The notes under the pieces were generated by a model. The model was given only the letters and a program-made list of their open reading frames with translations, searched no databases and was not told the DNA's origin. The translations under genes were made by a program, and so were the position numbers. Source: Podarcis melisellensis (taxonomy: Eukaryota). From it: a stretch of 64,000 nucleotides of DNA. Position 1 is the first letter of the stretch, and the number at the start of each line of letters is the position of its first letter. Shown here in pieces: positions 508 through 38,777 of the stretch. Location of the stretch: assembly GCA_964234715.1 (NCBI GenBank), contig OZ174275.1; one strand, 5' to 3'.

Positions 508-658
508 CAGTAGCCCAAGCAGGTATGGGCTTGCGGGGTTGACTCTCATCATCTGTTGAATCATCACTGTTCAAATCCATTCCATAATTATTCACATCAA
601 TCTTGGGCTGTTTAGGGCCTTGTGGTGTCATCGGGTAGGAATTACAGCTAGTAGAGTT
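508..658 (-). CDS. INCENP: INCENP-A penultimate exon (start of IN-box)
   Basis: tttccag|AACTCT...ACTG|gtttgt; [51 protein letters not shown]. Confidence 0.95.
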
Positions 659-3600
659 CTGGAAAGAAGATGAGGAGAGAGCTAAGTCACTGGGTACAGA
701 ACCAGATTTTGCTGGCAAAGTTACAATCACAGAATTGTAGAGTTGGAAGGACCCACAAGGGTCATCTAGTCCAAACCCCTGCAATGCAGGAATCTTTTGC
801 CCAACATGAAGCTTGAACCCACAACCTTGAGATTAAGAGTCTCATGCTTTACCAACTTAGTGTTGTTGCACTGCGCTAAAATCTCAATACAGCCTTTTAG
901 GAAAGAACTTATTCTATCAGAAGAGCATGATGAATCACCACCACCTGACAAACTACAAGTCAATATGGCTAGCTTCACCCAGCAGCATGCCCCCCTCAAT
1001 CAAAACACACTGCAACCAATCATGCCCTAGGCCCTCTGATCTCTCGCTCCACCAGCAACAAATCTCTTTTCAAAGTTAAAGAAGCACAACTTTTCTGACA
1101 ATGGCCACATCATTATTCTTTAAAGGCCCCTTCTTTTATACAGTACAGCTTTCTCCATTGAGATAACCAGCTGTCAACCAGCAAGAAGGTGACAGTCCAA
1201 AGCAAAAATTCCAAATTCCAGTTAGCGTTAAGTTTATTTTCACACCAACTATAGCAAACCCAACTTGCCAACAGATCTGTACGTATTCTCCAATGTGTAA
1301 CACGTGTCTAAATATTCTTCCTCATTCACAACTTCCTCCTTTTATTGGAGTGTGTGTTTTAAATTCTGCCACTGCACTTTCATGTTATGTCTCTGCCTAC
1401 GAAATCCAAGGGAGTGAGGGAGAAGAGATGGTAAGATTCTCAAAATTCTCACATGTATGCAGTAAGTTTACCAAGAAGGGGAAATAGGGTCAGCAACAAA
1501 AGAACCCCCCCACACACATACAAAGTGGGGAGCAGCACCTCAATATTTTGCAATAAAATTTTACAGAAAAGTATTTGATTTTGGCCTGCTGCCCTTTTCA
1601 GGGTTTAAGATATATTGCTCCATTTAATGTAGCTGTTCACATAAGAGCAGCCTTCCCCAATCTTGTGCCCTCCAGGTGTTTGGACTACAACTCCTATCAT
1701 GGGAGCTGCAGTCAATCTAGTGCTCCAGGTTGCAGAAGGCAGACTTGGAAATAACTGGGTCAGAAAAACATATGTGGGACTTTACGTTCAAAGCCTTTAT
1801 TAAGTGGCCTCAAGGCACACTGAAGGTAATGTGCTTCTGTGGGTAGGCCTGTGCATTGCAGCACATGCTCTCTTATAGAGCAAGTCAACAGGGCCATCAT
1901 TACTCCTTTCAACGCCTGATCTGTGGTTTGTAGCTCACCTCGATAACCACTGTTGTATTCAGTTGTTTGCTGGAAGCCTTGGCCTCAGCCTCAGAAGCTG
2001 CTTTCTCTCGCTTCTCTTCTTGTTGCCGCTGTTCCTGCTAAAACACCAAAAGGCCACACAGTGCTGTTGATAGGTTACTGCTTCCACCCTACACTTGATG
2101 ACACAGTGCACTCCAGGAAGAAGCATACAGGGTCTGCCAATTTAAATTTCCCCTAAAGCAACTGGACCCAGACTTGGGGAGCTGAAAACATACCTTGTAG
2201 TATAAGGAATATATTCATGTGATAGAAACATGAGAACCACTTACCAATTTCCTCTCCTTTTCCTCTAACTCTTTTCTGAGTCGCTCCTTCTCTTTGGCTG
2301 CTGCTAAAACCTCTTTATGCAGCCGAGCAGCCTTCTCCTTCTCTTTCTGCTCATGCTCCCTTGCAGACAAAAGACACTTCATTACCATCCAAAGAAAGAA
2401 AGAAGGGGATCATGACCTTAAGCATGACCTGTACACCCAGCATTAGCTTGGGCAGCACTCCCAACAGCCTGAGGCATACACCTTGGGGCTCAAATCATTC
2501 CCCCCCTCACAGCTTCATCCATAGCCATATTTTTTAGATTGGTGAAAAGAACACCTACCCTTTCATGGGGTGGACGACTGTTGCGGCCTGGCCCAGCTCC
2601 CTGGGGGTGGGAGAGCAGCCCCATCCTCCCTTTGGTGCTAGCTGCTGGCTTCAGCTATGACTGGCAGTGGGGGATGATGGGATCGTCTGCCATTTTTTAA
2701 AATTTAAACTGGCCAGTATTAGCCTTTGAAGGGGGCAGGGCATCAGCGGCAGACCAGGAGGAGCAAGTCTTCACTCTGCCCTATATGGACTGGCTGTGCT
2801 GAGTGACTGGAAGCCTTCTCAAGTGGGTTGCTCAGTCATTCTGTTCTTACCGCTGTGCTTGGAGCCTCTCCTGTTCTCGCCTCTTCTCTAGTTCTCTCTC
2901 AGCAAACAGCTTTTTCTCCCTTTCTAGTTCCAACTGATGCTGCTCTGCAATCTTTCTAGCCCTTTCTTGTTCCTCTTCTTCCCTTTTTTTCTGCATTTGC
3001 TCCTTGTGCCTTCGCTCTTCCTCCTGAAAAGATAAGCACAGCAGGCTAGTGCTATTGCACTCATGCCCTGCTTTGGGACTAATAATAATAATAATATTTT
3101 TTTAAAAATAAATTTATTTATACCCCACCCATCTGACTGGCCACTGGGATGAAAGGATACTGGATTAGACAGGCCTTTGATCTGACCCAGCAGGGCCCTC
3201 CTTATAAAACAAAAAACTTTTGCCAATTCCTCTTAGCATAATGTCCTAAAGAGCTGTAGTGAAGTCATATAGATTATGCATAAACATCTGCATGGCAGGA
3301 ATCAAATCCTCAACTCCACCTGGGAAAACCACCCTAAAGTATTCAGTTGCTATTCACCTATGTTTCATAGATGAATAGCAACAGTGAATACTTCAGGCAA
3401 GACAAACTTATGAATTAGACTTAGATTTCTAGTAAAGTTTCCCCTTCAGGTTGTCAACCTCTGAAGCTTGATGAAGAGGCAGACATTTTTATTTTTTTTA
3501 AAGATCCTTAACTGGAGCTATATACTATGCTAAAGTAGCAGTTACCTTAAAAATCACTACAGATTTGGTGACCGTGAAAGACATAGAAATACTTGAAAGA

Positions 3601-6600
3601 GTAGCCTCTTCAAGTCCTGCAGCTACATGGCTTTGAATTTAGCCTCAACAGGGGTGTGCCTACTGTCCTACATGGCCAGCCATCCCCACACCCCTGCCCT
3701 TACCAGCTGCAGAGCTCTTTTTTTACGGGCATCTTCTTCTTGTTTCCGCCGGGCTTCAAGTTCTTCCAACTTCTTGGCAGCTACCTTCTTCTTAACTTTG
3801 TCCTCTGCCAGTTTTTCCTCACGCACCTACAATAGGTTGTGTATATCATGTCATTATACAGGTCATGTTTCTTTTAAAAACAAGATAAGCCTAACACTGT
3901 AATGTAAGAGATATGTCCTTTATAACGTACCAAACACTCTAAGCCCTTCACTGTTTTCACAAGACAAACACATGGAGGGAGGGACTTGTTGGGTTGATAA
4001 GACTATCAACTAACAGCACAATCCTAACCAGGTCTACTCAGAAACTAAGTCCTACTGAATACAATGGGGCATATTCCCCTGATGAGAGTAGTTAGGATTT
4101 CAAAATAGATAATTAAACTCTGAAGAACACATGGTTCCAAAATGCTCTCTGGCCATATTCATGTTCACCTTCTCATTTTTCTCCTCATGCTGAGCAAGCT
4201 TTTGCTCAAGCCGCCTTCTCTTCTCTTCTTCCATCTGCTCTACCCGTTCCCGAGCCTGCAACACCTTGCGAAGGCGATCTTCGCGCTTCCTGATGGCACA
4301 CAGGAGTTCAGTTAGAAAAAGCTCCAAGGCAGAACTAGGAAAGGAGTAACTGGAAGGATGTCTATGGATGCATACCGCTTTATCTCCTCCAGCCGCTGCT
4401 TTTTCCCCTCCTCCAGTTTCTGCCTCCTTAGTTGTTCTGCTTCCTCCCTCTTTCTTTGAGACTCTAACCGTTCTCTTTCCTTTTGCTGGGTAGGGACGGA
4501 AGTTCATTAGCACACATGAAAAGAATGATGTGTCTGTTAACAGTTACTGTAATATGGAAACCCACCCCCGGTAGAAGACAGGCAACAGAACTGGAAGGAA
4601 CTATTCTCTCCACTGTGGCAAATGTTCCTAACAGTGAAAACATCCTTTGTAGTGAAAGTGTAGTAGCTACAAAAAGAGAGCACAAATTTAGCCACCAATT
4701 TTCCCCAAGAGCAAGATAGGCAAGAACTGCTCAATCCCTCACAATGCCTGTTCTACACTTCTTCCCTCCCCCCCCCCCAGCTAAATCACAGCAAACAGTT
4801 AAGTGATTAGACAACACTCTCTATAGTACTTGAATGTATTGTTAGACCTAGAGCATGCATCTTTTACTTATTTCAGAAAGGCTTTGATGCACCTTATGGT
4901 GGATTGGGTAGGAAGAATCACATAGCAACACCACACTGGTAATTTCTGTCTACCTTCTTGAAATATTGCACCCTACACTTCCTAATACACATGCAGTCTA
5001 GAAATGCCCAGACCTCAGACAAGCCATCAAGTGATTTGACAGGTAGATCTAGCACAAGACAGGGCTCCTTTGCCTTCAGCTACATAGAAGCAGATGCTAT
5101 TTCCACTATCACCATCACACAATATTGACAGAAGCAACACACCTGCAAAAATTCTTTCATTTTGGCTACTTCTGTCAATATCCATGCATTAATAGAACTT
5201 GCAAGGAGTATAAAAATGCAGCAGCCAATATGATTGGGCTAGCTCATGGTTTTAAAAAAAAAGTTTGATCTACTGCCTTAGATGAAAAAACGAAGCTGAT
5301 AGCTAACCTTAGCCTTTTAATCTGCCCAAATTAAGCTATGTAGTTACTTTCTAACAAACATAAGGTAGGAGGAAAATAGGTATCCCTGTTTAGAAGGACG
5401 TCTCCCTGAATTCAATGATCATACCAGGTAAGTGTGCATAATGGAAGTGAAAAAGCTCTGGACCACCAGTGCCAAGGCCAAGTCCACCAATGCAAACTGA
5501 ACCAAGATCTTAAGAATGCATCTAGTTTCTTTTTTGCACTTTATTCTAAACTTAAAACAATTAAACAGAAAACATGTTAAGACATTCAAGAGAAGAAATG
5601 GCAGTTATTGATTATCGTGTTTTGAAATGGTTGTGGCTTTCTTACTACAGGGAAAATAGCACAATGCTACTACCCATTATCTACTTTTTAGTAAGATTAC
5701 CCTAATAAGCACTAAATAAAATGCTAGAATTCCACCTTAAAAAGAGGAAGCAATGTTAAATCACTATGCAGGTTAAGAATGCCATTAGATAACACACCAT
5801 GTTAATGATATACAAATACAGCTACTGTGAGACCAAATGTTGTTACTTACAACAAACCCCCGCTGTACGAAGAGAAGATTGAGAAATAATTAATGCCTTT
5901 GGAAGTTAGCACCCAAATTATCAGTATTTCATTGCCAACAATACAAAAGGACTAGACCACTAGTTGATATAGGATTTGCCCTATTCAACTCTCTTCACCA
6001 AATGACAGCAATCTGCCATGCTTCACCAGTCAAGCCCTGTTTAACCCAAGAAGAAGCAATGGATTTAACCAAACGGCATGCAATAAACTTATGCTAAAAG
6101 ATCACTGAAAAGCTAAGCTATGGAGTGGGGATGGAGTAATTCACAACCTGCAGTCAAAGACATAAGCTGGTTGGCTCAACGCAAAGGAGAAATGTTGCTC
6201 TCATCCAATCCAATGCCAGTCCTTTCAGTCTCTTAAGCCCTCTTACTCTTTCAGCTCCTCCTTCCCTTAAGCCCATGTGAAGTTTTTGTACAATTTATTT
6301 CTTACATTTACATCCATCCTTTCATCCCTGGAACTCAAGGTGGTATACATGGATTTAAAAACAAAACAAAACAAAACAAAACAAAACAAAACAAAACAAA
6401 ACAAAACAAAACAGGACTTCACTCTACCTGGGGAGTGGCCTGGATAGGAGTGTTTTGTTTGATGAATGATTTCATGGTTGCACTTCGACTCAAAGAGCCA
6501 GGGGTCATCATGAGCACTCGGTTCTTATGCACTGTATGCAAGAATGTCTTGAAAGGACGGACAACCTGAAAAATACAGGAAGTGATCAGTCCTTGGAAGG

Positions 6601-9600
6601 CAAATGATGGGACCTGGTTCGCTCCCAAAGATGGAATTCTCGACTTACTTTGCTGGCAGGGCACTGAGGAGATACAGCCCTTTTCCTTGCAGGGGAGAAG
6701 TCCTCCTCTGAGTGCTGTCCTTCATCTTGCTCATAAACTGCCCTTTTATAGCTTGGCTTCCTCCTGTAAATATTAAATATGAATACAGGGCTCATTTTAT
6801 AGGATGCACCAGCAGAGAAATCAACCACCTCCTTGTCTCAGAATTACCATGGGAAGTACAGGACTCTGGCTCCATTCTCTGTTGCTTAGGGTCCTTTGAG
6901 GCCAGAAGAAATATAGCTGCTCAGTTAAGTATTTTAATTAACTATCCTCTCACATAGGAGCTACCCATCAACCAGCCAATGGACCTGCTCTCCTATTCTC
7001 ATGATGCTTACAGTCTTCTCTGAAAATCCTCTCTCCTCACAGGAGAAAAAACCTGTAAGAATACCCATCTTGTATCTTCCCTTCACTTCCTCTCCTTCCA
7101 TTCTTCCACTGTTTAGATCCTAGCACCTTCAACCTGCATACAGGTGTCAACCAAACAGAACAATTAAGCACTTAATCCTCAGATATCATCTTGTTTTGCT
7201 CCATGGAGGTTTTGTCCGAAGAAAACATACCTAGCACTCTGGGGCTGCTTTTGCACCTCATCAGTCCTTTCAGAACTTTCCCCTGCATACAGAGAAAGAG
7301 AGCTGCAATTAGTGATGGTGAAAGTGTTTTATGTAGCAAAGGCCTGAAGCCAAAGTTGTTTAGTCAACAAATATATGAATACTTATAATTGTCAGGGCAG
7401 AGTTATTATTAATTATTATGATTATTAGACCTATACCATAGATCTCAGGGCAGTTCACACCATAAAGTTACAATATAAAAAAGGCAAAATACATAATAAA
7501 AATAAGAACAGAAACAAACCAATAACCCCCCTTTCCACAAAACATTTAAAAGGGAATCGGTGGTAATCAGCCAACGGCCAGGTTAAGGAGAAACATTTTC
7601 ACCTGGCACCTAAAGGTGTATAATAAAAGTGCCAACTGTACCTCCCTGGGGAGAACATTTCACAAATGGGGAGTACAGTACTGTAGAAAAGGACCATTCT
7701 CATGTTGTAACCCTCTGGACCTCCTGTGGAGGCACATAAAGAAGGGCCTCAGAGGATGACCTCAGGGTCTAGGTAGGTTCATATGGAGACAGCCAGTCCT
7801 TGAGGTATTGCTGTTCTGAGCTGCTGAAGGCTTTATAGGTCAAAACCAGCACTTTGAATGGGGCCCAGAAACTAAATGGCAGCCAATGCCACTGAATTCT
7901 GCATTAGCTGAAGTTTCCGAACCATCTTCAGAGACAGTCCAGCACTGCAATAATCTAACCTAGAGGTTTACCAGAGCATAGACAACAGTAGTTAGGCAGT
8001 CCCTGTCCAGATAGGGGCACAGCTGGGCCACCAGCAGAAGCTTATGGAAGGCACTCCGCATCACTAAGGTCAACTGAGTCTCAAGATTCAGTTACAGATA
8101 GGTAGCCGTGTTGGTCTGCCATAGTCAAAAAAAAAAAAAAATCCTTCCAGTAGCACCTTAAAGACCAACTAAGTTAGTTCTTGGTATGAGCTTTCATGTG
8201 CATGCACACTTCTTCAGAGTCTCAAGAGATAGAAATGGATCCAGAAGCACCTTCAAGCTCCATACCCACTCCTTCAAGGAAGTGTAACCCCATCAAGAGC
8301 AGGCAACATCCTAGTCATTTGGTCTAGGGAACTGCCCACCAGCAGTGTCTCAGTCTTATTTGGATTGAGCTTCAGTTTGTTGCCTCTCATCTAGTCCATT
8401 ACTAAGGCAAGACAACAGTCCTGCACATCCACTACCTCTCCTCCAGATGTAAAGGAGAAGTAGAGCTGTGTGTCACCAGGATATTGCTGACAATGTACTC
8501 CAACCCTCTGGATAACTCCACTCAGTGGTTTCATGTAGATGTTGAACAGCACAGGGGATAAAATCAAACCTTGAGAAGGCTCCCACACATTGAAGGCTCC
8601 AGGGAACTGATGAACACTCCCAAAGCAACGCCCTCTGGGAACAACCATCCAAGTAGGATGCCACCCACCCGTAGCTTGGGCAGCTGCACCAAAATGATAC
8701 CACGGTTGATAGCATTGAAAGCCACTGAGAGGTCAAAGAAAATTAACAGGACAACATTTCTCCTGACAGTGGTCCTCACACAGGGCAACCAAAGCAGTTT
8801 CTGTGCCAAAATTGGGCCTAAACCCCCAATAGATATAGAAAATCAGTTTCCTGCATAAGCACCTGGATCTGATCCAGGAAAGAGACACAAACAACTGGTT
8901 GGTAGTTACTTAGATTTTCCAAATCCAGGGAGGATTTGTTAAGGAGTGGTTTCATCACTGCCTCCTTCAAGTAGGCAGGGACTAGCCCCCTCTCGCAAGG
9001 AGGCATTAATCACCTCCCTGGCCCAGCCAGCTTTCCCCTCCCTGCTAGTTTTTAACCAGTCAAGAGGGGCAAGGGTAAGAGCCCTAATGTCACCCTGACC
9101 AATCCAAGCACCTTGTCCACATCCTCAAGCTTTACCAACTGAAACTCATACAACACAATAGGACTAGCCAGTGCTCTGGACACCCCATGAGATTCATCTG
9201 CTGTAACAGCAGTAAAGATTTTATCCCCAAAATGCTTTGCAAACAGGTCACTATCAGCTACTGTTGGTTCCACCACCTCCTTTGGGCCAGAATGTAAAAG
9301 GTCCTGCACTACCCAGAAGAGGATGCAATGGAGGCAGCAAATTATGTTGTCTTTGCTGCCTTCACTGTCACTAGGTACGCTTGACGATGAACCCTCAGCA
9401 CTGTTTGGTTGCATTCAGCTGGATCTTTCCTCCACTTACATTTGAGTTGTCCCCCAGCTTGTTTCCTTGCCCTAAGCTCTGGAGTATACTGTTTACTTCC
9501 CTTATAGACATAATTCTGATTTCTAGAATTTCAATATGTAGCAAATCAAGCTTGTGTAGACTCAGTACATTGGGCTGTGTATTAATGAAATGTTTCTTTA

Positions 9601-12600
9601 AAAACAGAATACTACTAATTGGATTTTGCAGAAGTGACTTGGTGGAGCACTTCTTGGGTATGCCTGTCTTATGCATATTAATGGAAGCCCAGATGGGTTT
9701 CTTCACTTGCTTTCCAAGTTTATACTGAACAGCAAGAGGTGAAACCTACTTTAGACTAAGCATATTGCCAATACTTGATGAGATTTCATCCTTATTCAGC
9801 AAATATGCAGGAATACATTCTGTGAGTCTCTTGGGACCTGGCACCTGCCTAGCAGGCAGGCATCTTCCAACATACGCAAGACCCTTTTTCATTTGGGCAG
9901 GAAGAGGTTGATCTGAAAGTTGGGCATATTGACATTAGTCCCTTGTCATGGTCAGATCACTTGCGGTTGAGATTTATGAGGATGGTTTGGCCTTGGAAGC
10001 TGATGGATCCAGTAGGTTTCCAGGTTGCTCCAAGGGATTTTCTGGCTGATATGACGTGTACTCCTGTCAAAGCTGTGGCTGACCTCTGGAAATCTGAATG
10101 GCTCAGGCTCTTAACATGATCACCCCTGAGCGCCACTTCATGGAGCTCGTTTGGCTCCTTAGTATATTCCAGAGCTTAGGGCAAGGAAACAAGCTGGGGG
10201 ACAGCTCAAACGTAAGTGGAGGAAAGATCCAGCTGAATTCCTGTGTATGTGACATAGCCAAGTTTGCTATGAATTTTTATAGGACCCTTCCTTTCCAAGA
10301 CCTCATGGCAGCATACAGTGCTTCCTCACAACAATTTTTCAATGTAGATTAGTTCAAGAGAAAACTGGCTGAAGCTCACCTCATTAACTTCATGGCCAAA
10401 CTAGGATTTGAACCTGGACTTCTCAGTCAAACACTAATACACCATTTACTATACCACATTGGCCAGTCAAGTCATTATTTTTGCTTGAGCAACTGAGCAT
10501 CTTGCAAATAATAGGCTTGTAAACTTGCTTTTCCTCAAAATACATTCTATCCAACTCACCGTTGACCTTCTCTGCTACTTAGCCAAGGAGTATACTGACC
10601 TTTGTCATCTCCATCTTGTTCCACAGGTTTGATAACTGCTTGCAGACTGGCCTTGTGAGAACGAAGGGACATGCGAGGGTTCTCATCAACCTGCAACAAA
10701 GGCAAATTCCTTCTCAGTACAAGCCCCTCCCATAGATGTGTAATCACTAGACAACTAAGTGGGCCCTTTAACGATTTAGCACAAATAATGTTAGGCAGAC
10801 TAAGCCCCTTCGAGTATCTCTAAAAATGATGTTGGCACTTCAGTGAGAGCCATAGGAAAGTAGTCATTCCAGGACAGCACTCAGGTTCACTAATGTGGAA
10901 TCCAACATGCGCAGGCTCAAATGATGCAATCATGAACTTCAAAGGATTGACTACAGATTAAGTCTGTGTGTGTTTAACTCTGAACGTGCAGTTTCTGTCA
11001 AAACATCTCATCCAGCATGTCAGTGTTGAGCAGGTCTGGAGGCAGGACAGATGTACCCTGAAGATGCACCATGGAATGCCATCCAACTCTTCCATGCACA
11101 TTACACTCCCCCTTGCTTGAGTCTGGATGGTTGCTAACCACACAGTTCTACCCAAAAATGAGTCACATAGAGTTGAGTGGGGCTTACTGCTGGGTAAATG
11201 GGTATTGGATTGTGGCCTTAAACTTCTTTTAGTCTTCTTTAGAACTTACCTTCTGAGATGGTGGCTCTATCATCAATCTAAGAGAGAAAAGGTATGCATA
11301 TTTTTAAAAGTAAAAACTTTGCAAATTCCTTTCATGCTTCTATCTTGCAGCATGAATTTTAATTGGTCTTATCATTTCATTGTATCTTTAAATGCATTGA
11401 AGTAATGAAATGAAGTTATCAACCTATCAGCTGAACTCTAGCCTCAGCTCATACTAAACTACAGAAAGCCCATACAACACCTCACTGCTGCCATGCTTTC
11501 AAAAATAGATTCACCATTTCCTTTCTCTTCTGTCTGGGTACAAGTCTAGTTATTTAATACAATTTCCGCAAAAAATACATTGTGTATGTGGTGTCACTGA
11601 CAACTTGAAACCTGTGCAGAGGAGGGTGGCCAAGATGATAAATGGTCTGGAAACCAAGCCTTATGAGGAACAGTTAAGGGAGATGGGTATGTTGTACTGA
11701 AGGCCTTAAAGGCATCCAGGGAAAGTAACAATACTGGCATTTCTTTAGATTGCAATTCATAAATTATATCAAGAAACCTTCTTGCCGATCCTGCAATGCT
11801 TCAAAATGGCATGAAGCATGTCCGGTCAGGGGAGATGTAGGTTATAAAAACATCCAAGTACTTCACTATAATGGCAGCGAAAAGCTTAGCGTCCACATTT
11901 ATAAGTGCTATTGGTCTGTACAAGTCCACTTTTGTGGAATCTTTACCCAGCTTCAGAGTTTCCTAAAGCATAATGTCCGTTCCTTCCTTTTGCAAGATAG
12001 AGTCTACCTCTGCTCTTTTAACAACAGCACCTGAACCTTTTACATTAAGCAATCACACTTTCACCAATCTATAAGATTCTACCATAATGTGGAGNNNNNN
12101 NNNNNNNNNNNNNNNNNNNNNNNNNNNNNNNNNNNNNNNNNNNNNNNNNNNNNNNNNNNNNNNNNNNNNNNNNNNNNNNNNNNNNNNNNNNNNNNNNNNN
12201 NNNNNNNNNNNNNNNNNNNNNNCTGTTAATAGGGTTGAGAATAGTAAGACTTGTACTGTCAGAATAAGTACCTAGACTTTGACCAGATCTATAAATAAAA
12301 TAGTGAACTCTGTAACCATAATTTGCCAAGAATACAGGCTTGGAGTCTCTTGGAGTTTCACCTGCTCAGGAGTCTATGAGCCCACTCTAAATCTACTGGA
12401 GACAGTGAGATTCATAGTCCTGTTGATTATAAATGCATCCATACCTCCCCCTCCCTCTTTTTCAGGTAAATAATGAAGGTTAAGGTTTTTCCACCTATTC
12501 TTCTAGCCTAAGTGATAGATAATCAGTTGTCATTTGGAGCAATTGAATTTCAGACTGCTTTTCAAGGGCTGTATTCACAGCTTCATTACTTGTTTTGGAA

Positions 12601-21480: not shown

Positions 21481-22124
21481 AAGAATTCAGGCACTTACCG
21501 TGCAAGTTTTAGGTGTGCTCCCTGCAGGGTTTGCAGTTTGCCTCTTTCTGGGCAAGCGACGGAGAACTTAAGTTTGTTTCCTTGGATTTGCTATTAACTA
21601 GCAGGTTCTGAGCATTTTCCTCCAGCTTTGCTCGACTCCTTTATCTTGGTAGGGAGGGAGCGGCTTGCGCTCATCCTCTTTTTCCCTTTCTTATATTACC
21701 CAGGAAGCTCTCTCCCCATTCAGCCCCTGGCAAGCAGCAAAGGAGTTAAACAATTTGCAAACGTAATGGCGCTTAATCTAACTCTTCTAAAAGCAAAATC
21801 TAATCAGGCTAGTTGAAAAGTAACCGTTCCTAACCGTATTGAAAACCCGGGCAGCGTTGGCTTCCTAGTTTCTCCCTATTACTGATTTTGCATGATGTAA
21901 GTTGTTTAACATTACATATGTATAAGTTGATGGTTACTCTTCGTTTGTCTTTCTGGCCTGTTAGCTTTCTCGCTCAACTTCAGTTTCCATGGCAGACTCA
22001 GACAAGCACGTTTGTAAGAAAATTGGTTGGTTGTCAATATTATCTGCTGCTAGGAGGAAATCACTATGCAATCAAATGCAGAATGCAATGATTAATGTAT
22101 TTTTCTCCTGTTTTAACCAGTGCC

Positions 22125-22261
22125 ATGGCAGAGGCAGGAGGCCCCACTCATCTTCTAGATGTTTGTAGCCGGAAGTTCACAGAATTCTTGTTCAATGCTG
22201 AACATAAATGCTTGGTGTGGTTGCGGGAAATCGAGGACGAAGCCCTGAAGATGTTTGATAG
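22125..22261 (+). CDS. INCENP-B first coding exon (CEN box)
   Basis: ttaaccag|TGCCATGG; [45 protein letters not shown]; AG|gtaggc. Confidence 0.92.
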
Positions 22262-28200: not shown

Positions 28201-31200
28201 TGCATAAATGCTTAGCATCTTGTCTTTCCAATGGAAAGGATTGAGGCACAAGAGACCTGAATCCTGGCATACTGTTACTATGCCTAGGTTAGCATTGTCT
28301 AGAGTACACGTTGTGCCCATGGTACGATTTCCACCTAACCTTAGCTGCCATCAGTTGAGGGTGGCTTTTGTGATACTGTTTCAGGAAAATACCCTTCATT
28401 GAACTAATTGTGCCTTCTCCACAGAAACAGCTGAAACTAAAATTACTGACACCCAGGTCTGTGGAGCTGACTATTCAGCCCAGAACTGTCCCCATGAGCA
28501 ATTGCAGAATATACGGTATGTTTTCTTTTGGGAGCATAATCTGGTGTGGCCTCTCTTTTTTCCTTTCAGCTTTGATTTAATCCACCTCGGTTTCCAGTCA
28601 ATGCAGTTACCAAAAGTTTGTTTCAGGTAGAAAGAGTTCTCCTGGAAGGTATTATGATGCCTTGTGTTAGGGATTGGTTACGCAAGTATATCTGATGAAA
28701 GCTTACCTTTGTTCTGGGAGATGAGTTCTTCCAGGATGGGTCCAGCCAGTTAGCCATATTCTTCTCTCTTTTCTTATCCCCCCACTCAATGGGTCACTGT
28801 TGGCAGGTGGGTGGACTTAGAAATAGTATGCAGTCCATTATCTTTACTGGTAAAAGCTCCATAATGAACATCTAGTATAACAGATCAGAGGAAATTTGGA
28901 TAGCTGGGTAAGCTTAACATGTGTTATGTACATTGACACAAAATTGGAAGTGTAATGCAAAATTGGCTATCATGAAACCATGTGGCATAACAGTATACAG
29001 TCGTACCTTGAATCCCGAATGCCTTGGTACTCAGATGTTTTGGCTTCCGAACGCCACAAACCCAGAAGTGAGTGTTCCGGTTTGCGAACTGACGGGGTTT
29101 CCATAGCTTCTCATTTGCTGCAGGAGCTTCCTGCAGCCAATCAGAAGCCACGCTTTGGTTTCCGAACGTTTTTGAAGTTGGAACAGATTCCGTTCTACTT
29201 CCAAGGACAACTGTATATTCTTGAACATGTTACTATATCAAAGTGTTATTTTACTCTAATCTGAAGAGTCTGAAATTTTGGATTCAAAAATATATAGAAG
29301 GTTTTTTTTGTTTCTTGTGCTTGCTAGGTTTTTGTTTTGTTTTTGTGGTTTCCTCTGTAATCCCCTCCCCAGTTTTCTTTGAGCTTCACTGGAGAGCTTA
29401 TAGGGCACCTTGACCTCTAAAATGACATTGAGTAAGAGGCCCAAACCCTTTTGATCCTGCTGAATCGTTGGGAGTCTTCAGACCTCTGACAGCAAGGATA
29501 ATTTATGTAATTGGGATTGCTATGTATACACTTCGTGCTCTTTTCAGGAGCCAGAGTTATAAACAAGCAATGGATGAGCTGCCTGCTGCCCAGCACACAC
29601 AGGATGGAGGCGCTTCTCTTCCTAGTCACAAACCCACATCTCCTGCAAACAAGCCCTTATCTGGCCCAGGCAAGGTAAATAAATGCCAAGGACAACATAA
29701 GGGCCCTTTTCTGATGCCACATCACTGGCCAGCCACTAAGAACATCCATACTCTTTCGACAGATCGCACGGCCTTTCAAAAACTTCTTCCAGACAATACA
29801 GAAGAGCCAGCTACTCAAATCCCCAGGGTCTGCAGGCCACAATAGTGTCATGAAAAATCTCATCAAACGTGGCACCCCCAGTAAGCCTACCTCCAAGGTA
29901 AGTGTCAAGGATGCTGCTCAAGTAAAAAGTCTCCTACACACTGAGCTCCTGGCAGCTGCAGTTACCTTGCGTAGCAGAGCTAAGGGACCTCTGCATGAGA
30001 CCTTGCAGAACTGCTGCCAGCTGGATTGGGCTTGGTGAACTAATAGTGTGGGCTTATGCATCCTTTTATCTCACTGAGAGATGTGAGGTTAGGGCTAGGA
30101 TTGTCATTTTGTAAGTGGCCTCGTGGGAAATTTCCAGCGCATACTAGCAAGAGAATTTTCTTCCTCCACCTGTGCATGTGGGTTCGATCGGTCTGCCTTA
30201 CTCTTGGGGAAACCAATTTGGGAGGTCACCAGTCAGACCAAGCCATCATCTTCTGCCCTTTGTCCTATCTGAAGCATGGCTGAAGTCTCTTCAAAATTAA
30301 GCTTGTTGGACTTCCCAGCTTTGGTTTAGTTTAATTTAATTCCCATTCCTGCTGTGGAACTTGGGATCTTTGATAGCCTTAAGGCAGCAAATTGGGATTT
30401 GTTTGCCTCATCTCTCCTCTGTTATTACTGATAAGGTAAAGAGGTTATTTGCTGGGCCCCAGGGCCATTTTGCATCTTCTCACAAGCCTTTCCTTTACTA
30501 AGGCAGAAGGAGCTGCTATTGAATCACTTTAATGAACTGGTTAGTTAGCATTTAGACTTGGAAACTAAGTAACTTGTCTTTCCTTTCCTTTTCATATTCA
30601 TCCTACCAAAGGGAGAGTTTGTTGTAAGTAACTACTTTTCTCATTTTGTGGCCTGGGAATTTATTTATTTTTAAAAAGACTTAACTGCCCTGAATACACT
30701 ACCCATTTTAGCTGCATATGGATCTTTTCAGAAGGTTTTGGTGTTTCACGTACCTAAGTACAGCTACACGTACTGATCTGGCTTTAACTCGTGGTAGTGA
30801 GGTTGGAGAAAACATTGCTTTTGTTGGCTAGTGGGTCAATAATAAATAAAAATAGTAAATAATAATAATAATAATAATAAATGGTTGCCACAACCAGAAG
30901 TTGTTTAAACTTTCTACACATCATAGGCAAAGGAGCGACAGCGTCTTGAGAGTTTGCGGAAAAAGCAAGAAGCTGAGCAGCAGAGGAAGCAGAAAGTTGA
31001 GGAAGAAAAAAAGCGGCGACTAGAAGAGATAAGGCTGTAGGTAGCTGTTCACCCTCAGTCCCGTTTGGATAACTGTGGGCCATTCACTTAGATAAGTCCA
31101 ACCTGCAGTCTAAACTAGGCATGGCAGGCCATTTATACAAATTATACCACCTTTCCCAAGCCTGGCATATGATGTCCATCTTGAGGAAGTTCATGTTGCA

Positions 31201-34200
31201 GCTAAAAGGAAGGAGGCGACTCAGGAGTGCACTCTCGGCGAGGACCTGATTCTTCCTTTGCATCGCCAGCTTGAATGCAAGCTAGGGAAGAATCAGCAGC
31301 CTGGTGGCATCAGGTGATGGGCAGGCGGACCATAGGTGGCCTGTGGGGGGAGGTCATGCCAAAGGAAGAGAGAACTCTCTTCAAATATGGCAGGACGTAC
31401 AGGTGTAAACTCTTCATAGCACTGAAAATATATTTCATCTATATTTATTGGGGTGGGGGAAACTCAGTCACCTGAGATCACTATGATGTCAGATGAACCG
31501 TTTTTCCTTGGTGGTACAGCATGCTAACAAAGGAAAATTGAAGTCAAGCAAGGCTTGCTGCCTTTTTGTATTATGTTGGAAACTGCCCAGAGTGGTTGGG
31601 GCAATCCATTCAGATGGGCAGGATATAAGTAAATAATAATAAAAGTAATAGTAATAATAATAAAATTACCACTGATCAACTGGTTCAAGCCCTGCTTTCT
31701 ACAAGGATTGGCAGCACTACCAAGTTCCCCATGGGGAGCTCTGTACTGCAGCCACTTCCAGTGGGCTGATTGGCCATGATACCATCCTTCCTTGCTAATG
31801 AACAATTGGGAGTGCATGTTAAGGTTCCCTGTGGCGCGTTCCCTGCCTGCCCCATACCTGATACCACATATCATGTCAGGTATGGGCCTGGTGGACGTGG
31901 TTTGGGGAAGTAGCATCGCTTGCCAAATTGGGGCTTTGTGCCAGGCCTAAGGTTCCCCAAACTCTACTATAAACACACCTGTTTCTCTATATCTCACAGA
32001 AAGCGGGAAGAACGGCTAAGAAAGACCCTGCAAGCTCGAGAACGGGTGGAGCAGATGGGGGAAGAAAAGAGGAGGAGAATGGAGCAGAAGTTATCTCAAC
32101 ATGAAGAAAGGAGCGAGAAGGTGGGAGATTGTCCCATTTTCTTCCTAGCCTTTTAATGACAATGGTCAGAGCATGTAAGCGGATTCCTATTGGTATGTTG
32201 TGTCATCTATTCTGAGAGATGTGGTTTTATGTTTTATTAAATAGGCTACCAATCCCAACGTTAATTCTTTGCATACAGTGGTACCTCGGGTTACATACGC
32301 TTCAGGTTACATACGCTTCAGGTTACAGACTCCGCTAACCCAGAAATATTACCTCAGGTTAAGAACTTTGCTTCAGGATGAGAACAGAAATCGTGCTCCG
32401 GCAGCGTGGCAGCAGCAGGAGGCCCCATTAGCTAAAGTGGTATCTCAGGTTAAGAACAGTTTCAGGTTAAGAACGGACCTCTGGAATGAATTAAGTACGT
32501 AACCAGAGGTACCACTGTATATGTAATCCAGGGGTCACTAATGTGGTACCCTCCAGATGTTGCTGGAATACAGCTCCCATTATCCCTGACAATTGGCCAT
32601 GCTGACTGAGGCTGATGGGAGTTGTAGTCCAACAATATCCGGAAAGCACCACATTGGCTACTTTTGGTTTGGCCTTTTAACAAGAGCTGAAGAACTTTTG
32701 CTCAGATGTTTCTGAACTCTGACTCACATCAGCCCCAGCCTGGGTGACCCAAGGTAATGATGATGGGAGTTGCAGTCCAAGAACATATGGAGGGCACTTG
32801 GTTCCCTAGCCTTGCTCCTGGCAATCCTGCGAGGCCAGGGAGGCTGAGAGGCTACAACTAGCTCAAGGTCACCTCATGAGCTGCACCCAGTGGGGATTTG
32901 AACCTGGGTCTCTTCACTTCTGGTCTGGCACTGACTACAGGATCGGCACTGAGATCATAAACTCAAATCAGTACTTCACAGGCATGTAGGGTTGACAATT
33001 CTTAACTGGATTCTGTTCTCCCCCCCCACACACACACTTCCCAGATACTATATGAATTGTTATTCAGTATGGTCTTGAGGTCTGAAATATGAAAACTAAA
33101 ATATGAAAGGATCTTTCACACAGGTGCGGGAAGAGAAAGTAGCAGAGGAAAAGACCAAGAAAAGAATATCTACTAAGAAAATGGGGGAAGCAGAAGCGCG
33201 AAAACAGAAGGTGCTTCAGATGGTGAGCACTGTACTGAATGTCAAGTGAAAGGGTGTACAGAAGAGAATGAAACTGAGGCAGAGTATTAAGCCCTGCATG
33301 CTGGAGACTGAAATAGTCCAACTCCTGAGCAACGTCTTATTGTAATCCTGAAAAGTGCATTTGCCGTTGCCTGAAGTATCAAACCCTGGAGGTCCCCTTG
33401 GAAAGAGAAAGATGCATTTAAATCTCCGCTGACCTGTTTGTTCCTATTAACAAAGCCAGGCCATAAGGAGTTGTCAGAAGGGGTGAGGAGTGAGCAAAAT
33501 ATGGAAGGACTCTTGGTGGTGAGAATATGTAGGTTTTTAAAACCTACCCGAATGTCTTAGCATCTAGCTTCCTAGCATTCATGTGGGTAAGAGGTAATAC
33601 CATTGCCACATGCCCTCAGAGATATTAAATACAAAATCCTCTAGCTCAGGCATTACCTTCTGCATCTTTTGGGGAGCCATGAAAAAAGCACCCAAGTCCC
33701 ACTGTGGTTTTTGTTGCACGTATGGGTGAGAATTGAGAAGTATTGTCTGAACTGCTTGGTTTGTTTCTAAAGCATTCTGCTTGGCTGTTTAGCTTTTTTA
33801 ATAAACGTTGTTACAATAAAACCTCTCTTAATACAATTCCTGTTGTGTACATAAGGAGCAGTTAAATATAATGGGGCAGAGTTCTCTTTGTTGCACTACA
33901 GGCAGCCTTTCTCAACCTTGGGTCCCCAGATGTTGTTGAACTACAACTCCCATCATCCCTAGCTAGCAAGGCCAGAGTTCAGGGATGATGGAAGGTGTAG
34001 TCCAACAACATCTGGGGACCCAAGGTTGAGAAACACTTCACTACAGGGATTTGGCATTTCCCTGCCTGCTCTTCATGTTTGTGGTGGGTGCTGATTCTGT
34101 ACTCCTTGTTTCAGGAAGAAGGGCACAAAAATCGAGAGTGGAAGACCGTTGGAGAAATTAAGAAAATGCTGGAGCACAATTGCACAAAACAGGGGAAAGG

Positions 34201-37200
34201 GTGAGGACTTTGCTTCCTCGGTTACAAGGTTGGATGACCCTAGGAACACTTGATGGAATGGTGTAGATGCAATTCTGATGACTTCCCAAAATTGTATGTA
34301 AAAGGGCCAGTTCTAAAACCATATGGCTTTTTTGGGGGGTAATATATGCATATTGTAATTAAGGGAAACTGCTTAAAGCTGCAGTCCTAACACACACTTG
34401 CTAGTAATCCAGTCACAAGTAAACATGTTTATGTATGCTCTCCTTTCACTTTTTAGACACCATGGGCAGCATGATAAAGAGAAATTGGTGAGACCCCAGG
34501 AGCTAGCAGTAGTTACAGAAGAGGAAGAAAATCTGAAGGTACGCCAAGGAATTGGAAAGCCAGGATTTGAAGTGGGGCTGGGCATAAAGCCCCACTTGCC
34601 AGCAGCTATGTAAACAAGTCCTTCTAATTTTAGCAGATGCATTTTCAAAATGCAGGACATCAACTTGTCCCTTGTACTGCTGATGGGAACTGCTTGAATT
34701 GAATATTTGCTTGTCTGACACCATTTAAATTCTGTAAAGTGCTGTGCTAATCTTGTGCAGCTATGTTCCCACCATACTGAACCAGATTGTAGGTTTGTGC
34801 ACATTTTTTGCACGATATGCTCTACAAGAGAACTGAGTTTACACTTATATTTGTTCTTCAGACAATGGAATGGGTGTCTGGGGAGTCACCCAGGGGAAAG
34901 GTAACAATCATAATTATGCTTCAGTGATGATGGGGGAGCAGGTGGGAAGAGTTAATGGACTTATTAGTGGAGCATCTTAATGGATTTTTCCGAAAAGAAA
35001 CTTGTTTTTGAAGACCCTCTGCATCTTTACAAAAAAAAGCTGCTGGTGCCATCTGGTGAAGAGGCTACCCTACTAAATTTCAATGCAGTCTGGGTGAAGT
35101 GGATGGAATCAAAGACCATTGTAGAATGGTCAGCTAATAAATCTGATCTTGCCAATAGGATGAACACAATTCTACCCGCCTAGACGAGCTGCAGCAAGAA
35201 AAGAAAGCTGTGCAGGTGGACACAGTTCCTACTACTAATAAATGGTTGAATATAACTGCCCAGGTAAGCGATAGATAGTTGAGGCCTGTGGTCAGATACC
35301 TGGGCTTTGAATTGGAAAGTGACTTGGATGTCCGTTGGTATCTCACAAACTTGTGATACCTTTTCAGTAACTGAAATTAAAAGCAGTCCTCTGTTTTATG
35401 CTCGGAGAGATATTCACTCTGTCTATGCCCTGAGCAGTGGGCAGACACAGTCCAAAATTGCCTTCTGTTGCCCCTCCCTTCCCTTTGCCTGTTAAGTAAG
35501 CACTTGGGGATGGGGCAGTGTCTATGTTTCTGCAGTTCCCCTCACTTGTTGGCTATAGAGCAAGCAGTTGTCCTTCAGTGTATCCTTGCTGTGTAGTGTA
35601 CCTCAAAGCATCATTAGGGCCTACACTGTGATTAAAGCAGATCAAGAACAGCCAGGCTGTATATTGCTGAATGTGTTAAATGCCTCCAACTTGGGGACCT
35701 TTTATTTCTCTTCTCTCCTTACCTTACCAACACCTTCTAGCACAGCCGCTTGGCTGTCACTGGCATAGGGTTTTGAGTGAGTTTTGTGACCCAGATGCTA
35801 CATTAAGCATTTCCTGAGGCTGTACACTTCCTTCCTCTTTGAAGGAGACAAGACATCAAAAATAACACTCTTCTGAAAACATATTGGAAGAAACCTGCAG
35901 CTGTTTATGCTGCAATAAGCAGACATGAATTCTAAAGGTGCTGCAGTTCTGACAAATGAGCACAAGGGGGCATGAGAATATGAAGAACTAAGCTGTTTGA
36001 TTGCCGTTATCAAAGAAGACTGGGAATATTTGTAAAGGGCAGCCCTTCCATGGCTGTTGCCAGTGCTTTTTTTCTGGGGGGACGCATACCCCTAAATATT
36101 TTGTGAATCTTTGTACTTTTGTCCATTTACTGTATTTATTTTTCCCAATTTGAACTATAAAATGGTGATTTTCTTGAGTCAAAATGAGAGAACCCCCTAA
36201 ACCTTTTTAAAGAAAAAATGTACCGGCTGTAGCGCCGCCATAGGAAGGACTTAGAAGAAGCAGTACTTCCTAATACTGAGGGGGTTACTTTGGAGCAATG
36301 GTATCTCGCACCCTATACACACACACTTACCGGTATGCTATTCCATTTAGCCTGGCAGCAACCAGAATGAGGGAGGTGAAGCTTCAAAATTCTCCCATGT
36401 TGCCTTGTGAGTATCTGGTGTGCAGCTCCAATAACTCACAAAAGCGCAGGAGAAGGATTGATTACTAGAAGCCAGCAAAAATGCAGTTCAGCATTGTTCT
36501 GGTTAGAGCTGGAGTTATTTTCTTTCAGCCAGTGAAGGAGGAAGCTGTGAGTGCTATATATAGCAATGCCCTTGTGTGTCTATGAAGTCCTAGACTTCAT
36601 GGTGTTTCAAAGTGTCAGCATGTTGGAACAAGCTCAGTTCCGACGTATAATGTAACTGGCCGCTTTTGCATTATGTACATTCATGTATTCATTCTTGAAG
36701 TAGCCACTCCCTGGTGGCATATTGTGATAGACAAACTGGAACTACCAATCTCAAGCCTTAATTTTTAGGAACTTGCATAGCTGGTGCCTTTTAGTTCTGT
36801 GACGCAGTCACCAGCATCTCCCTAGCTATTTATCTTTTGGACTGTACCACCAATGGCTCAGGCCCGCAATAGTTCAAGGACCGCCTCTCCCTTTATAAAT
36901 CAACCTGGCCTCTGCAATCATCATCTGAGGCCCTTTTTCGTGGGCCTCCTCTGCAAGAGGTCTGGAGGGTGGCAACACAAGAACAGGCCTTTTCTGTAGT
37001 GGCTCCCTGCTTTTGGAATGCTTCTCCCAGGGAAGCTCACCTGGCACTGTCATTATATATCTTTAGGTTCCAGACAAAAATGTTTCTCTTCAACCAGGTC
37101 TTGGGCTGATTAATATTCTATGGCCTTTTAAATGTATTTGGGATGAGTGTTTTTGCTTTGCTTTGCTTTGTTTCTAACTATTTATTTGTGATTGTATTCT

Positions 37201-38777
37201 GTTTTTTTATCTTGTGAACCACCCTGAGATCTTTGGATGAAGCGCAGTATATAAATTTAATAAACAATAATAATATACACACATTACAGAAAATAAAATA
37301 AAAAACTTCAAGCTCATTAGAGCATCCATATTCCATATTAAATCTTCTAGGTATGGTAATCATAAGCTTTCCATAGTGATTAATGATCCCGGAGGACATA
37401 TCCACAGTGTCATTTGAGGTGCTTGCATAATAAGAAACTTAAAAAGGCACAGGTTGAAACATTGGAACTGGAAGATGTATAGCCAAAGAGCCCTGTTGGC
37501 AAATTGCTGCACCTGTAACATTAACCAATCCATTCAGGTCTCGTCTTTATTACAGAAATCTCCTGCTGCCCGCTCTAGTCAAATGAGCCCCCAAAGTCTG
37601 AAAGGTACCAAGTCCCTCAAAGTCAACCACAATGACTATGGAATGGACTTGAATAGCGATGACTCCACGGATGACGAAAGCGAGCCCAGGAAACCCATCC
37701 CTGCATGGGCCACTGGTAAGAGTGAGTTTTCAGTGGCCGCAAAATGGTATCACTGAAATTACAGGGTTCTTGCTTCAGATTCTGATGGTCCTCTCGGTTT
37801 TTGCTGGGTCTGTCCTAATACGTAAAAGACATAAACAAATCTCTCAGAGCTCCGTTCTGCTACAAGACCCTGACAGTACCACAAGAGCCTTTACAGCGCC
37901 TGTACACAACTGTACGGAGAGAGCAAAGTCAATGTAGGCTTCATTGCTCTCTATGAGACGCTCTTTTTGGATGGTGGATGGTTGGTTGAAGGACCCTGAG
38001 TGAGATGCAAGGAAGGGAAGATCTCCCGGGGTGAGAGACAGGGAGAAGAAAGGCAAACCCCCAGGTGAGAGCTGGGAGGGCCCCCCGCTTTCTGTGAGTG
38101 GCAAGGGTTAAGAACTACCTTTGAGAGAAGACTTTCTTTTTTCTTCCTCTGTTTTTGTTTTTATTTAGTTTCTTGTATTGTGAAAAAGCTTTAATAAAAT
38201 CTTACGGGGGGGGGGGTTCATCGTGTAGCCAACTTGCCCAGCTTGAAATATAATTTCTGTTCTACAGGCCTGCCTCTCTTTGGTCATCTGACAAACTTGC
38301 TTTTTAATTCCTTTGGGGTTTTTTTGAATCAAAATGATAAGTCTGCTTGTGCGGTGGAGACTATTGGATAATTACAGTGAGGTATTCTGTATGTAGGCCG
38401 AGCCATACCTAGATCCGTTGAGTGCTGCAGCTGAATTGAGCTGCTGGCTAGAGTCCACTCATAGATTGGGTTTCACATTTTCCCCTCTACGTAGAAGTGC
38501 TTCAAGTGGAGATGTGTTACTACTTGAAGGATTACTCACAGAATAACTGCTTGTTTCCTCAGGTCTTCAGCTTAATGAAGCTGTTACATACCAATACTAC
38601 AACCCTCCAGATATCAACAAGTTCTTTGGAGTAATCTTAAGTCCTAAACTAGAAGCTATCTTCTACAAAAGTAAGCCGAGGTATTTCAAGCGCACAAGTT
38701 CAGCTGTTTGGCAGTCTCCACCTCTTCCGGGTACCAAAGCAGCATTGCGTGCCTCTAACAGTATGAAGAAGCACTGA
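22125..38777 (+). CDS. Inner centromere protein-like paralog, copy B (complete, about 838 aa)
   Basis: GCCATGG start. Exons 22125-22261, 22828-22941, 23931-24652, 25220-25268, 26536-26569, 27879-27996, 28425-28515, 29548-29674, 29763-29897, 30612-30623, 30927-31036, 32000-32120, 33124-33222, 34115-34200, 34457-34538, 35159-35263, 37556-37715, 38563-38777 total 2517 nt in one open frame, with the same intron phases as copy A. Intact IN-box ending [17 protein letters not shown]...MKKH*. Confidence 0.92.
22828..22941 (+). CDS. INCENP-B exon
   Basis: [38 protein letters not shown]; 114 nt. Confidence 0.92.
23209..23747. mobile_element. Probable solo LTR in an INCENP-B intron
   Basis: TGTTA...TAACA termini, flanks CTAT/CTAC, minus-strand AATAAA near 23350. 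Confidence 0.45.
23931..24652 (+). CDS. INCENP-B large disordered-region exon
   Basis: Within ORF 23911..24660; LSRRRSS...[19 protein letters not shown]; T|gtaagt donor in the same phase as copy A. Confidence 0.9.
25220..25268 (+). CDS. INCENP-B exon
   Basis: ttctccag|GCCAC...CATAG|gtgagc; [17 protein letters not shown]. Confidence 0.8.
26536..26569 (+). CDS. INCENP-B 34-nt exon
   Basis: cctctccttag|GCCTTT...AGTGAG|gtaagg; phases 2/0. Confidence 0.7.
27127..27260 (+). mobile_element. tRNA-Lys-derived SINE with CR1-type tail
   Basis: Aligns by eye with the reverse complement of 722-857. Confidence 0.75.
27630..27787 (+). mobile_element. Sauria SINE 3' fragment
   Basis: Matches the 3' half of 47489-47834; ACCTTT tail. 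Confidence 0.8.
27879..27996 (+). CDS. INCENP-B exon
   Basis: tttttcctatag|ACTTTG...AAAG|gtaaac; open frame, phases 0/1. Confidence 0.75.
28425..28515 (+). CDS. INCENP-B exon
   Basis: ttctccacag|AAACAG...ATACG|gtatgt; phases 1/2. Confidence 0.78.
28998..29213. mobile_element. Tc1/mariner (Tigger-like) MITE
   Basis: TA|CAGTCGTACCTTG...CCAAGGACAACTG|TA imperfect TIRs with TA TSD. Confidence 0.7.
29548..29674 (+). CDS. INCENP-B exon
   Basis: [11 protein letters not shown]...SGPGK|gtaaat (compare human RSYKQAVSEL). Confidence 0.88.
29763..29897 (+). CDS. INCENP-B exon
   Basis: [45 protein letters not shown]|gtaagt. Confidence 0.9.
30612..30623 (+). CDS. INCENP-B 12-nt micro-exon (GEFV)
   Basis: Pyrimidine tract then caaag|GGAGAGTTTGTT|gtaagtaac. 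Confidence 0.78.
30927..31036 (+). CDS. INCENP-B first SAH exon
   Basis: [37 protein letters not shown]; 110 nt. Confidence 0.92.
32000..32120 (+). CDS. INCENP-B SAH exon
   Basis: [40 protein letters not shown]; 121 nt. Confidence 0.92.
32276..32517. mobile_element. Tc1/mariner (Tigger-like) MITE
   Basis: TA|CAGTGGTACCTCGGGTTAC...GTAACCAGAGGTACCACTG|TA TIRs with TA TSD. Confidence 0.85.
33124..33222 (+). CDS. INCENP-B SAH exon (24 nt shorter than copy A)
   Basis: [33 protein letters not shown]|gtgagc. Confidence 0.9.
33900..34037. mobile_element. Palindromic MITE (gactacaactcccatc family); relatives at about 1646-1740, 26110-26235, 32530-32810, 43780-43880 and 57672-57740
   Basis: tttctcaaccttgggtccccagatgttgttg...caacaacatctggggacccaaggttgagaaa near-perfect hairpin. 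Confidence 0.75.
34115..34200 (+). CDS. INCENP-B degenerate SAH exon
   Basis: ccttgtttcag|[30 protein letters not shown]|gtgagg; phases 0/2. Confidence 0.78.
34457..34538 (+). CDS. INCENP-B degenerate SAH exon
   Basis: cactttttag|[27 protein letters not shown]|gtacgc; an alternative in-frame donor exists at 34487. Confidence 0.75.
35159..35263 (+). CDS. INCENP-B exon
   Basis: [35 protein letters not shown]|gtaagc (KxLNxT as in copy A and human). Confidence 0.8.
36840..37270 (+). mobile_element. L2-type LINE 3' fragment
   Basis: ggcctttctgtagtggctccc...tggaatg, similar to the other L2 3' ends in this window. Confidence 0.6.
37556..37715 (+). CDS. INCENP-B penultimate exon (start of IN-box)
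   Basis: [13 protein letters not shown]...[27 protein letters not shown]|gtaaga. Confidence 0.94.
38563..38777 (+). CDS. INCENP-B terminal exon (IN-box, TSS motif)
   Basis: [70 protein letters not shown]; TSS at 38694-38702. Confidence 0.94.

Follow-up and report, generated by a model that had tools for sequence, protein, structure and literature searches.

Does a lizard carry a second working gene for the inner centromere protein INCENP, and what would its product do? The question is raised by a 64,000-nucleotide stretch of Podarcis melisellensis DNA (GenBank assembly GCA_964234715.1, contig OZ174275.1; hereafter the window), in which the open reading frame listing and a six-frame comparison place two INCENP genes head to head on opposite strands, copy A on the minus strand and copy B on the plus strand. 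INCENP scaffolds the chromosomal passenger complex (CPC): its CEN box forms a three-helix bundle with Survivin and Borealin, and its IN-box binds and activates Aurora B. To our knowledge, the CPC field usually regards INCENP as single-copy. Copy A is the canonical lizard INCENP; copy B, judged by its phylogenetic placement, is the lizard ortholog of the sauropsid gene called INCENP-like or INCENP2, and most likely scaffolds a variant CPC that is minor or context-specific, a reading in which we have considerable confidence.

Copy B is an already known and annotated paralog, not a discovery. Xu et al. (2009, J Cell Biol; PMC2806593) described the chicken gene under the name INCENP-like, and it appears as INCENP2 in the review by Carmena, Ruchaud and Earnshaw (2009; PMC2806521), which states that it has “only been described in chicken”. 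Podarcis raffonei INCENP (XP_053252194.1) matches copy A at 98.6% identity. For copy B, the identities are 97.8% with “inner centromere protein A-like” of P. raffonei (XP_053252481.1) and 96.9% with “inner centromere protein B-like” of P. muralis (XP_077788446.1), and by these two matches copy B is already annotated in the genus. A first reading of the letters alone (the sequence-only reading) could not tell whether copy B had been characterised before; the chicken reports of 2009 and the Podarcis annotations show that the paralog is not new.

INCENP proteins were gathered from a library of 1.84 billion proteins with a profile of both IN-box exons, and word-index searches added lacertid orthologs. 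In a maximum-likelihood tree of 44 rows (quick IQ-TREE run, LG+C20), an amniote clade (Shimodaira-Hasegawa-like approximate likelihood ratio test, SH-aLRT, 99) leaves frogs, lungfish and coelacanth outside and divides into three branches: mammals, canonical sauropsid INCENP and INCENP-like. The INCENP-like clade (SH-aLRT 100) comprises 19 rows from squamates, turtles, crocodilians and birds and includes copy B, and copy A falls in the canonical sauropsid clade (SH-aLRT 99). In the INCENP-like clade, the chicken protein is encoded by a gene whose last exon contains the incenp-like primer sequences of Xu et al. with zero mismatches; together with the tree, this match identifies copy B as the ortholog of chicken INCENP-like. 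The best 120 matches to alligator INCENP-like are nearly all sauropsid INCENP or INCENP-like proteins of 700-930 residues with both Pfam domains, and the matches listed come from numerous turtle, bird, crocodilian and squamate species.

Both sauropsid clades mirror the species tree, with lepidosaurs set against turtles and (crocodilians, birds), and the duplication is therefore older than crown sauropsids. The same head-to-head arrangement is found in Pseudonaja (a snake), Pseudopipra (a manakin), the lacertids Zootoca and Lacerta, and Gallus (chicken); a contig look-up with an Alligator and an Anolis protein returned nothing. An inverted tandem duplication thus gave rise to the pair before the living reptiles and birds diverged from their last common ancestor, and the arrangement has been kept since; the gene tree and the synteny in five other genomes agree with the sequence-only reading, which saw in copy B an old inverted tandem duplicate. 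The duplication may be older or younger than the split from mammals: the free tree gives a trichotomy, and grouping canonical sauropsid INCENP with INCENP-like is better by 2.6 log-likelihood units (approximately unbiased test, p 0.58).

Exon models were guided by Podarcis, Zootoca and snake proteins, and every exon was set on GT-AG sites. The models comprise 18 coding exons per copy, bounded throughout by GT-AG introns; 17 of the 18 of copy A lie inside the window. The features of copy A are as follows; where no other basis is given, it is the exon model.

508-20650, minus strand: copy A, canonical INCENP, in-window gene span; last coding exon beyond position 1
20442-20650, minus strand: exon 1 (5' untranslated region, UTR); 3' end ~20442-20447, 5' end approximate, GTGAGT donor at 20441
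17500-17644, minus strand: exon 2, ATG 17636, CEN box (INCENP_N; Pfam PF12178, 31.2 bits)
15844-15951, minus strand: exon 3, TPSQK and RKKKR
14492-15201, minus strand: exon 4, large and disordered, HP1 motif PLVVI at 15014-15000
13036-13072, minus strand: small exon, 37 nucleotides
12095-12222, no strand: assembly gap (N), unfilled, in a copy A intron
11250-11277, minus strand: small exon, 28 nucleotides, LMIEPPSQK; peptide identical to Podarcis INCENP
10600-10690, minus strand: exon, 91 nucleotides
7231-7282, minus strand: exon, 52 nucleotides
6649-6763, minus strand: exon
6428-6565, minus strand: exon
5851-5862, minus strand: 12-nucleotide microexon, RGFV; Podarcis isoform X1
4376-4485, minus strand: exon in which the charged helical region (single alpha helix, SAH) begins
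4169-4289, minus strand: SAH exon
3704-3826, minus strand: SAH exon
2851-3023, minus strand: SAH exon
2245-2359, minus strand: SAH exon
1939-2037, minus strand: exon
508-658, minus strand: IN-box exon, first half, PAWA tryptophan (Pfam PF03941; match to human INCENP 798-849)

The features of copy B, on the same basis, are these.

22125-22261, plus strand: coding exon 1, ATG 22125, CEN box (Pfam PF12178, 62.8 bits; spliced contig of RNA run X1)
22828-22941, plus strand: exon, TPSQK and RKKKR (junction 22261/22828 in a run X1 contig and one run X24 read)
23931-24652, plus strand: large disordered exon, no PxVx[ILV]
25220-25268, plus strand: small exon, 49 nucleotides
26536-26569, plus strand: small exon, 34 nucleotides
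27879-27996, plus strand: exon
28425-28515, plus strand: exon
29548-29674, plus strand: exon
29763-29897, plus strand: exon
30612-30623, plus strand: 12-nucleotide microexon, GEFV
30927-31036, plus strand: exon in which the charged helix begins
32000-32120, plus strand: SAH exon, 83% protein identity to copy A (exon model and six-frame comparison)
33124-33222, plus strand: SAH exon
34115-34200, plus strand: exon, composition not SAH-like (exon model and composition)
34457-34538, plus strand: exon
35159-35263, plus strand: exon
37556-37715, plus strand: IN-box exon, first half, PAWA (Pfam PF03941)
38563-38777, plus strand: last exon, IN-box second half (FFG, RTSS), TGA 38775-38777 (open reading frame, Pfam)

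The frame of copy B is complete, with 838 codons from the ATG at 22125 to the TGA at 38775-38777, zero internal stops and an AATAAA 3' of the stop at 38875-38880. For copy A, 773 codons are open over 17 coding exons, which run from the ATG at 17636 as far as the donor that follows 508. The last exon, with the second half of the IN-box, was not found within 1-507 and thus lies beyond the window edge. The statement that both copies are frame-intact accordingly stands in full for copy B and, for copy A, over the 17 exons in the window. The only run of N in the window, 12095-12222, sits in the copy A intron that follows exon 13072-13036 and precedes exon 11277-11250, and the gap is intronic because every annotated Podarcis INCENP residue maps outside it.

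The two genes share their plan and little of their sequence. The ATGs, 17636 on the minus strand and 22125 on the plus strand, are 4,489 base pairs apart, in line with the sequence-only reading, which saw a multi-exon head-to-head pair with starts about 4.5 kb apart, and both genes have Pfam matches; exon order is common to them, and 16 of 16 comparable introns are identical in phase, again as that reading had it. The proteins are 39.9% identical across 705 aligned residues; in the DNA, the copies resemble one another only over exon 3 (74%), over the IN-box exon (78%) and at dispersed repeats that are not colinear. Each copy also has a 12-nucleotide microexon, encoding RGFV at 5862-5851 in copy A and GEFV at 30612-30623 in copy B, with the same GTAAGTAAC donor flank; its presence in isoform X1 and absence from isoform X2 distinguish the Podarcis INCENP isoforms. 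The microexon is kept in both paralogs and is therefore older than the duplication. It is the sole conserved “intronic” similarity of the two copies; the DNA comparison otherwise agrees with the earlier view that their introns are alike in nothing beyond dispersed repeats.

Pairwise comparison with Zootoca and Lacerta (NG86 method) indicates that copy B is under purifying selection. All 18 copy B exons are found in both genera, with no stops and with 6-nucleotide in-frame insertions as the only indels, and dN/dS over 838 codons is 0.38 (Zootoca) and 0.32 (Lacerta). Taken separately, the CEN box gives 0.08-0.24, a conserved middle block 0.05-0.09, the IN-box 0.10-0.22 and the disordered exon ~0.47. 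Within lacertids, the values for copy A are 0.39 and 0.65, above the 0.32-0.38 of copy B, so that copy B is at least as constrained as canonical INCENP. Neither disabling mutations nor a dN/dS near 1, for which the sequence-only reading had advised a check in relatives, is found in Zootoca or Lacerta.

These results decide against a decaying or neutral duplicate and against a false inverted duplication assembled around the gap. An assembly gap inside the finding and low expression of copy B might invite either explanation; yet both are refuted. Protein identity between the copies is no more than 40%; the gap falls in a copy A intron, a long way from where the two genes meet; and the arrangement recurs in five independent assemblies. 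Moreover, the copy B frame is intact with dN/dS of 0.3-0.4 across three genera of lacertids, and many sauropsid species have listed orthologs that are full-length and contain both Pfam domains.

Both interaction ends of INCENP are recognisable in the two copies. The CEN box (INCENP_N, PF12178; cutoff 25 bits) scores 62.8 bits in copy B and 31.2 in copy A, and the first half of the IN-box (INCENP_ARK-bind, PF03941; cutoff 22 bits) scores 31.8 and 31.1 bits in the two copies. The second half in copy B, at 20.5 bits (E 4.5e-4), falls below the PF03941 cutoff, and the last exon retains FFG and RTSS. Residues 798-849 of human INCENP (PDB 9si3) align to the copy A IN-box exon, and TPSQK followed by RKKKR, as well as the IN-box tryptophan (PAWA), is kept in both copies.

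The copies differ between these ends. An HP1-type motif, PLVVI, lies at 15014-15000 in copy A, and a regular-expression scan found no PxVx[ILV] motif in copy B. The EKRQ-rich, Gly/Pro-poor region measures ~230 residues in copy A versus ~90 in copy B by composition windows, so that the charged helix of copy B has less than half the length of that in copy A. Among canonical INCENPs, 14 of the 16 surveyed have PxVx[ILV], mostly of the P-x-V-E-I type, and a helix of 110-160 residues (30 in a partial tuatara protein); the 18 INCENP-like proteins surveyed have at most a loose match to the motif and a helix of 40-90 residues.

A separate observation concerns the N terminus of squamate canonical INCENP, which fits INCENP_N worse than that of the paralog (31 versus 63 bits here); a precomputed PF12178 match is missing from many squamate canonical INCENPs, and nearly all listed full-length INCENP-like proteins have one.

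A role as scaffold of a variant CPC is inferred for copy B because it retains the CEN box together with a full IN-box, including Trp, Phe and TSS. Going by these domains, copy B would bind Survivin and Borealin via the CEN box and Aurora B via the IN-box. Lacking a PxVxI motif, the complex would be without HP1 docking, and its kinase would be tethered by a charged single alpha helix of under half the canonical length; the shorter tether and the missing HP1 docking would change the location and reach of Aurora B. Such a complex would be minor or context-specific and unable to replace the canonical CPC.

Expression was followed with RNA reads and contigs from a close relative (organism A), placed on 17480-23479. 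Copy B is intact, spliced and expressed at a low level relative to copy A. The copy A junction 17644/20447, which joins the UTR exon to the ATG exon, is covered by 15 reads of run X24 and by contigs of runs X1 and X5; the first coding junction of copy B, 22261/22828, is covered by one X1 contig and one X24 read, and the reads are sense-strand. Spliced copy B transcripts, which the sequence-only reading had proposed to look for, are thus present, and with dN/dS of 0.32-0.38 they bear out its view that copy B is a functional gene. Contig depth for copy B versus copy A is 3.5 versus 290 in X1 (~1%) and 6.1 versus 29 in X5 (~21%), rough ratios from a poor measure of expression; mean read depth over the ATG exons in X24 is 0.77 versus 10.4 (~7%). 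Four studies contribute 14 runs that contain words from the large copy B exon; of these runs, X1 and X5 are shown to be RNA by their spliced contigs, and the other twelve are presumed RNA.

The region between the genes has two features.

20200-21600, no strand: CpG island between the genes, GC 0.49-0.70, CpG observed/expected 0.79-1.23; contains both first exons
20880-21279, plus strand: probable copy B 5' UTR exon region; weak, with sparse sense-strand X24 reads only and boundaries undefined

The CpG island is probably a shared bidirectional promoter. An “opposite strands” joint, 17500->22834, was considered as a rearrangement and rejected: it comes from copy A exon 3 reads on the similar copy B exon 3 (8 mismatches in 44). 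In run X23, 104-109 reads match only a 32-nucleotide stretch of a copy B intron, 22716-22748, with flanks unlike it on both sides; the stretch is probably a fragment common to an abundant transcript or repeat elsewhere.

Where might the variant complex act? The sequence-only reading suggested that copy B may build an alternative CPC of the germline, meiosis or embryo; in such a complex it would pair with Survivin2 and Dasra A/CDCA9. The analogy is with Drosophila Australin, Xenopus Dasra A and zebrafish Birc5b/Cdca9, which are germline or maternal CPC paralogs, and the low copy B/A ratio in the RNA runs would fit a minority cell type. However, chicken transcripts are detectable in somatic DT40 cells (PMC2806593), the gene is described as “expressed in somatic cells” (PMC2806521), and the 14 runs with copy B words have coded tissue labels; nothing here ties copy B to gonad or embryo. 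A germline or embryonic role is unsupported here and, on balance, doubtful. Equally tentative is a wider version, in which an HP1-independent, short-tether CPC, possibly with Survivin2 and Dasra-A, would have persisted in every lineage of reptiles and birds over ~300 million years to serve a specialised kind of division, for example meiosis or early cleavage in large, yolky eggs, and mammals, which are without the gene, would cover the role differently (Aurora C).

Alternatively, copy B may be a modulator rather than a full scaffold, titrating or tuning the canonical CPC through binding of Aurora B or of Survivin and Borealin on a short tether and with no docking to HP1. Low expression from a promoter region common with INCENP, the clade-wide loss of the HP1 motif and shortening of the SAH, and the failure of the gene to substitute for canonical INCENP in chicken cells (PMC2806593, PMC2806521) are in keeping with this idea; the CEN box and IN-box, however, are the most strongly constrained parts (dN/dS 0.08-0.24), as a complete scaffold would need, and we judge a pure modulator improbable.

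Several points tell against the preferred reading of copy B as scaffold of a variant CPC. The searchable literature contains no binding, localisation or loss-of-function data on INCENP-like from any species. The motif and SAH comparison uses simple regular expressions and composition windows, not structural measurement, and PxVx[ILV] is loosely matched in a few of the INCENP-like proteins of birds. The transcription start and first exon of copy B are undefined, the copy B/A ratios are rough, the RNA comes from a close relative and not from the assembled species, and the tissue labels of the runs are coded.

The closest known system is chicken INCENP-like/INCENP2. The lizard gene belongs to the same clade, whose chicken member the published primers hit exactly, agrees with the chicken gene in head-to-head site and both Pfam domains, and is likewise expressed at a low level relative to INCENP, at 1.4% of INCENP in DT40 cells (PMC2806593) and 1-21% in the lizard relative. 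Identity of lizard copy B to archosaur members is ~50%. The chicken-only scope of the 2009 review has been overtaken by current annotations, which span squamates, turtles, crocodilians and birds, and no description of a clade-wide loss of the HP1 motif or of a short SAH in INCENP-like was found in the searchable literature. Compared with canonical vertebrate INCENP (human, PDB 9si3 chain N), copy B retains the CEN box, the TPSQK/RKKKR patch, a charged helical region, an IN-box with Trp and TSS, the exon-intron plan and the 12-nucleotide microexon; it differs in having no PxVxI, an EKRQ-rich helix less than half as long and ~40% identity to copy A.

Precedents for alternative CPCs come from elsewhere. 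Oikopleura dioica likewise has two INCENP genes in one animal genome, INCENPa and INCENPb, with INCENP paralog switching and a CPC division of labour shown by experiment (PMC6681789); by contrast, its duplication is an independent tunicate event, and the lizard pair is known here from sequence and RNA alone. Drosophila Australin, Xenopus Dasra A, zebrafish Birc5b/Cdca9 and mammalian Aurora C, often meiotic or maternal, differ in that other subunits are duplicated; zebrafish has a single incenp. Nothing in the lizard locus is categorically new, and the old question of a second INCENP is sharpened in four ways: the gene is pan-sauropsid, it shares a single CpG island with INCENP in a fixed head-to-head pair, both its interaction ends are constrained, and it is consistently remodelled, with no HP1 motif and a short helix. 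INCENP-like is a natural test of tether length and HP1 docking in Aurora B function, for which chicken DT40 cells are a tractable system.

Downstream of copy B, open reading frame translations and Pfam identify two further genes, the nearer of which begins ~12 kb away.

50730-53366, plus strand: FTH1, first two coding exons, 50730-50843 and within 53079-53366 (open reading frame translations, Pfam Ferritin)
59257-63132, minus strand: BEST1, 3' part (Pfam Bestrophin on 62845-63132)

FTH1 lies downstream of copy B, and copy A is transcribed away from it, as the sequence-only reading had seen; human INCENP presumably points away from FTH1 likewise. In Zootoca and Lacerta, an NLRP-type gene (PYRIN, NACHT) lies beyond the INCENP 3' end (L005 18973-19417, L006 17897-18107), and in manakin and chicken a gene for a small leucine-rich repeat protein lies 3-7 kb past INCENP-like (L002 24563-25501, L007 33990-34941).

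The remaining observations concern repeats. Three pairs suggested as exons by tblastn (7570-7758 with 36919-37106, 701-852 with 27131-27282, and 17122-17320 with 39058-39256) were rejected as non-colinear dispersed repeats. The pairs 17122-17315/39063-39256 and 18313-18495/23224-23406 are 180-190 nucleotides long, 78-79% identical, inverted and at non-homologous sites; they look like dispersed repeats of the short interspersed nuclear element (SINE) type, and AT-rich microsatellites adjoin at ~16950 and ~38950. A remnant of a long interspersed nuclear element (LINE) occupies 8391-8809 on the minus strand in a copy A intron, with reverse-transcriptase-like open reading frame fragments and the motif SPVLFNIYM. 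Finally, a (CT/GA)n-type microsatellite at 60786-60934, which translates as SLSLSL, adjoins the last exon of BEST1.

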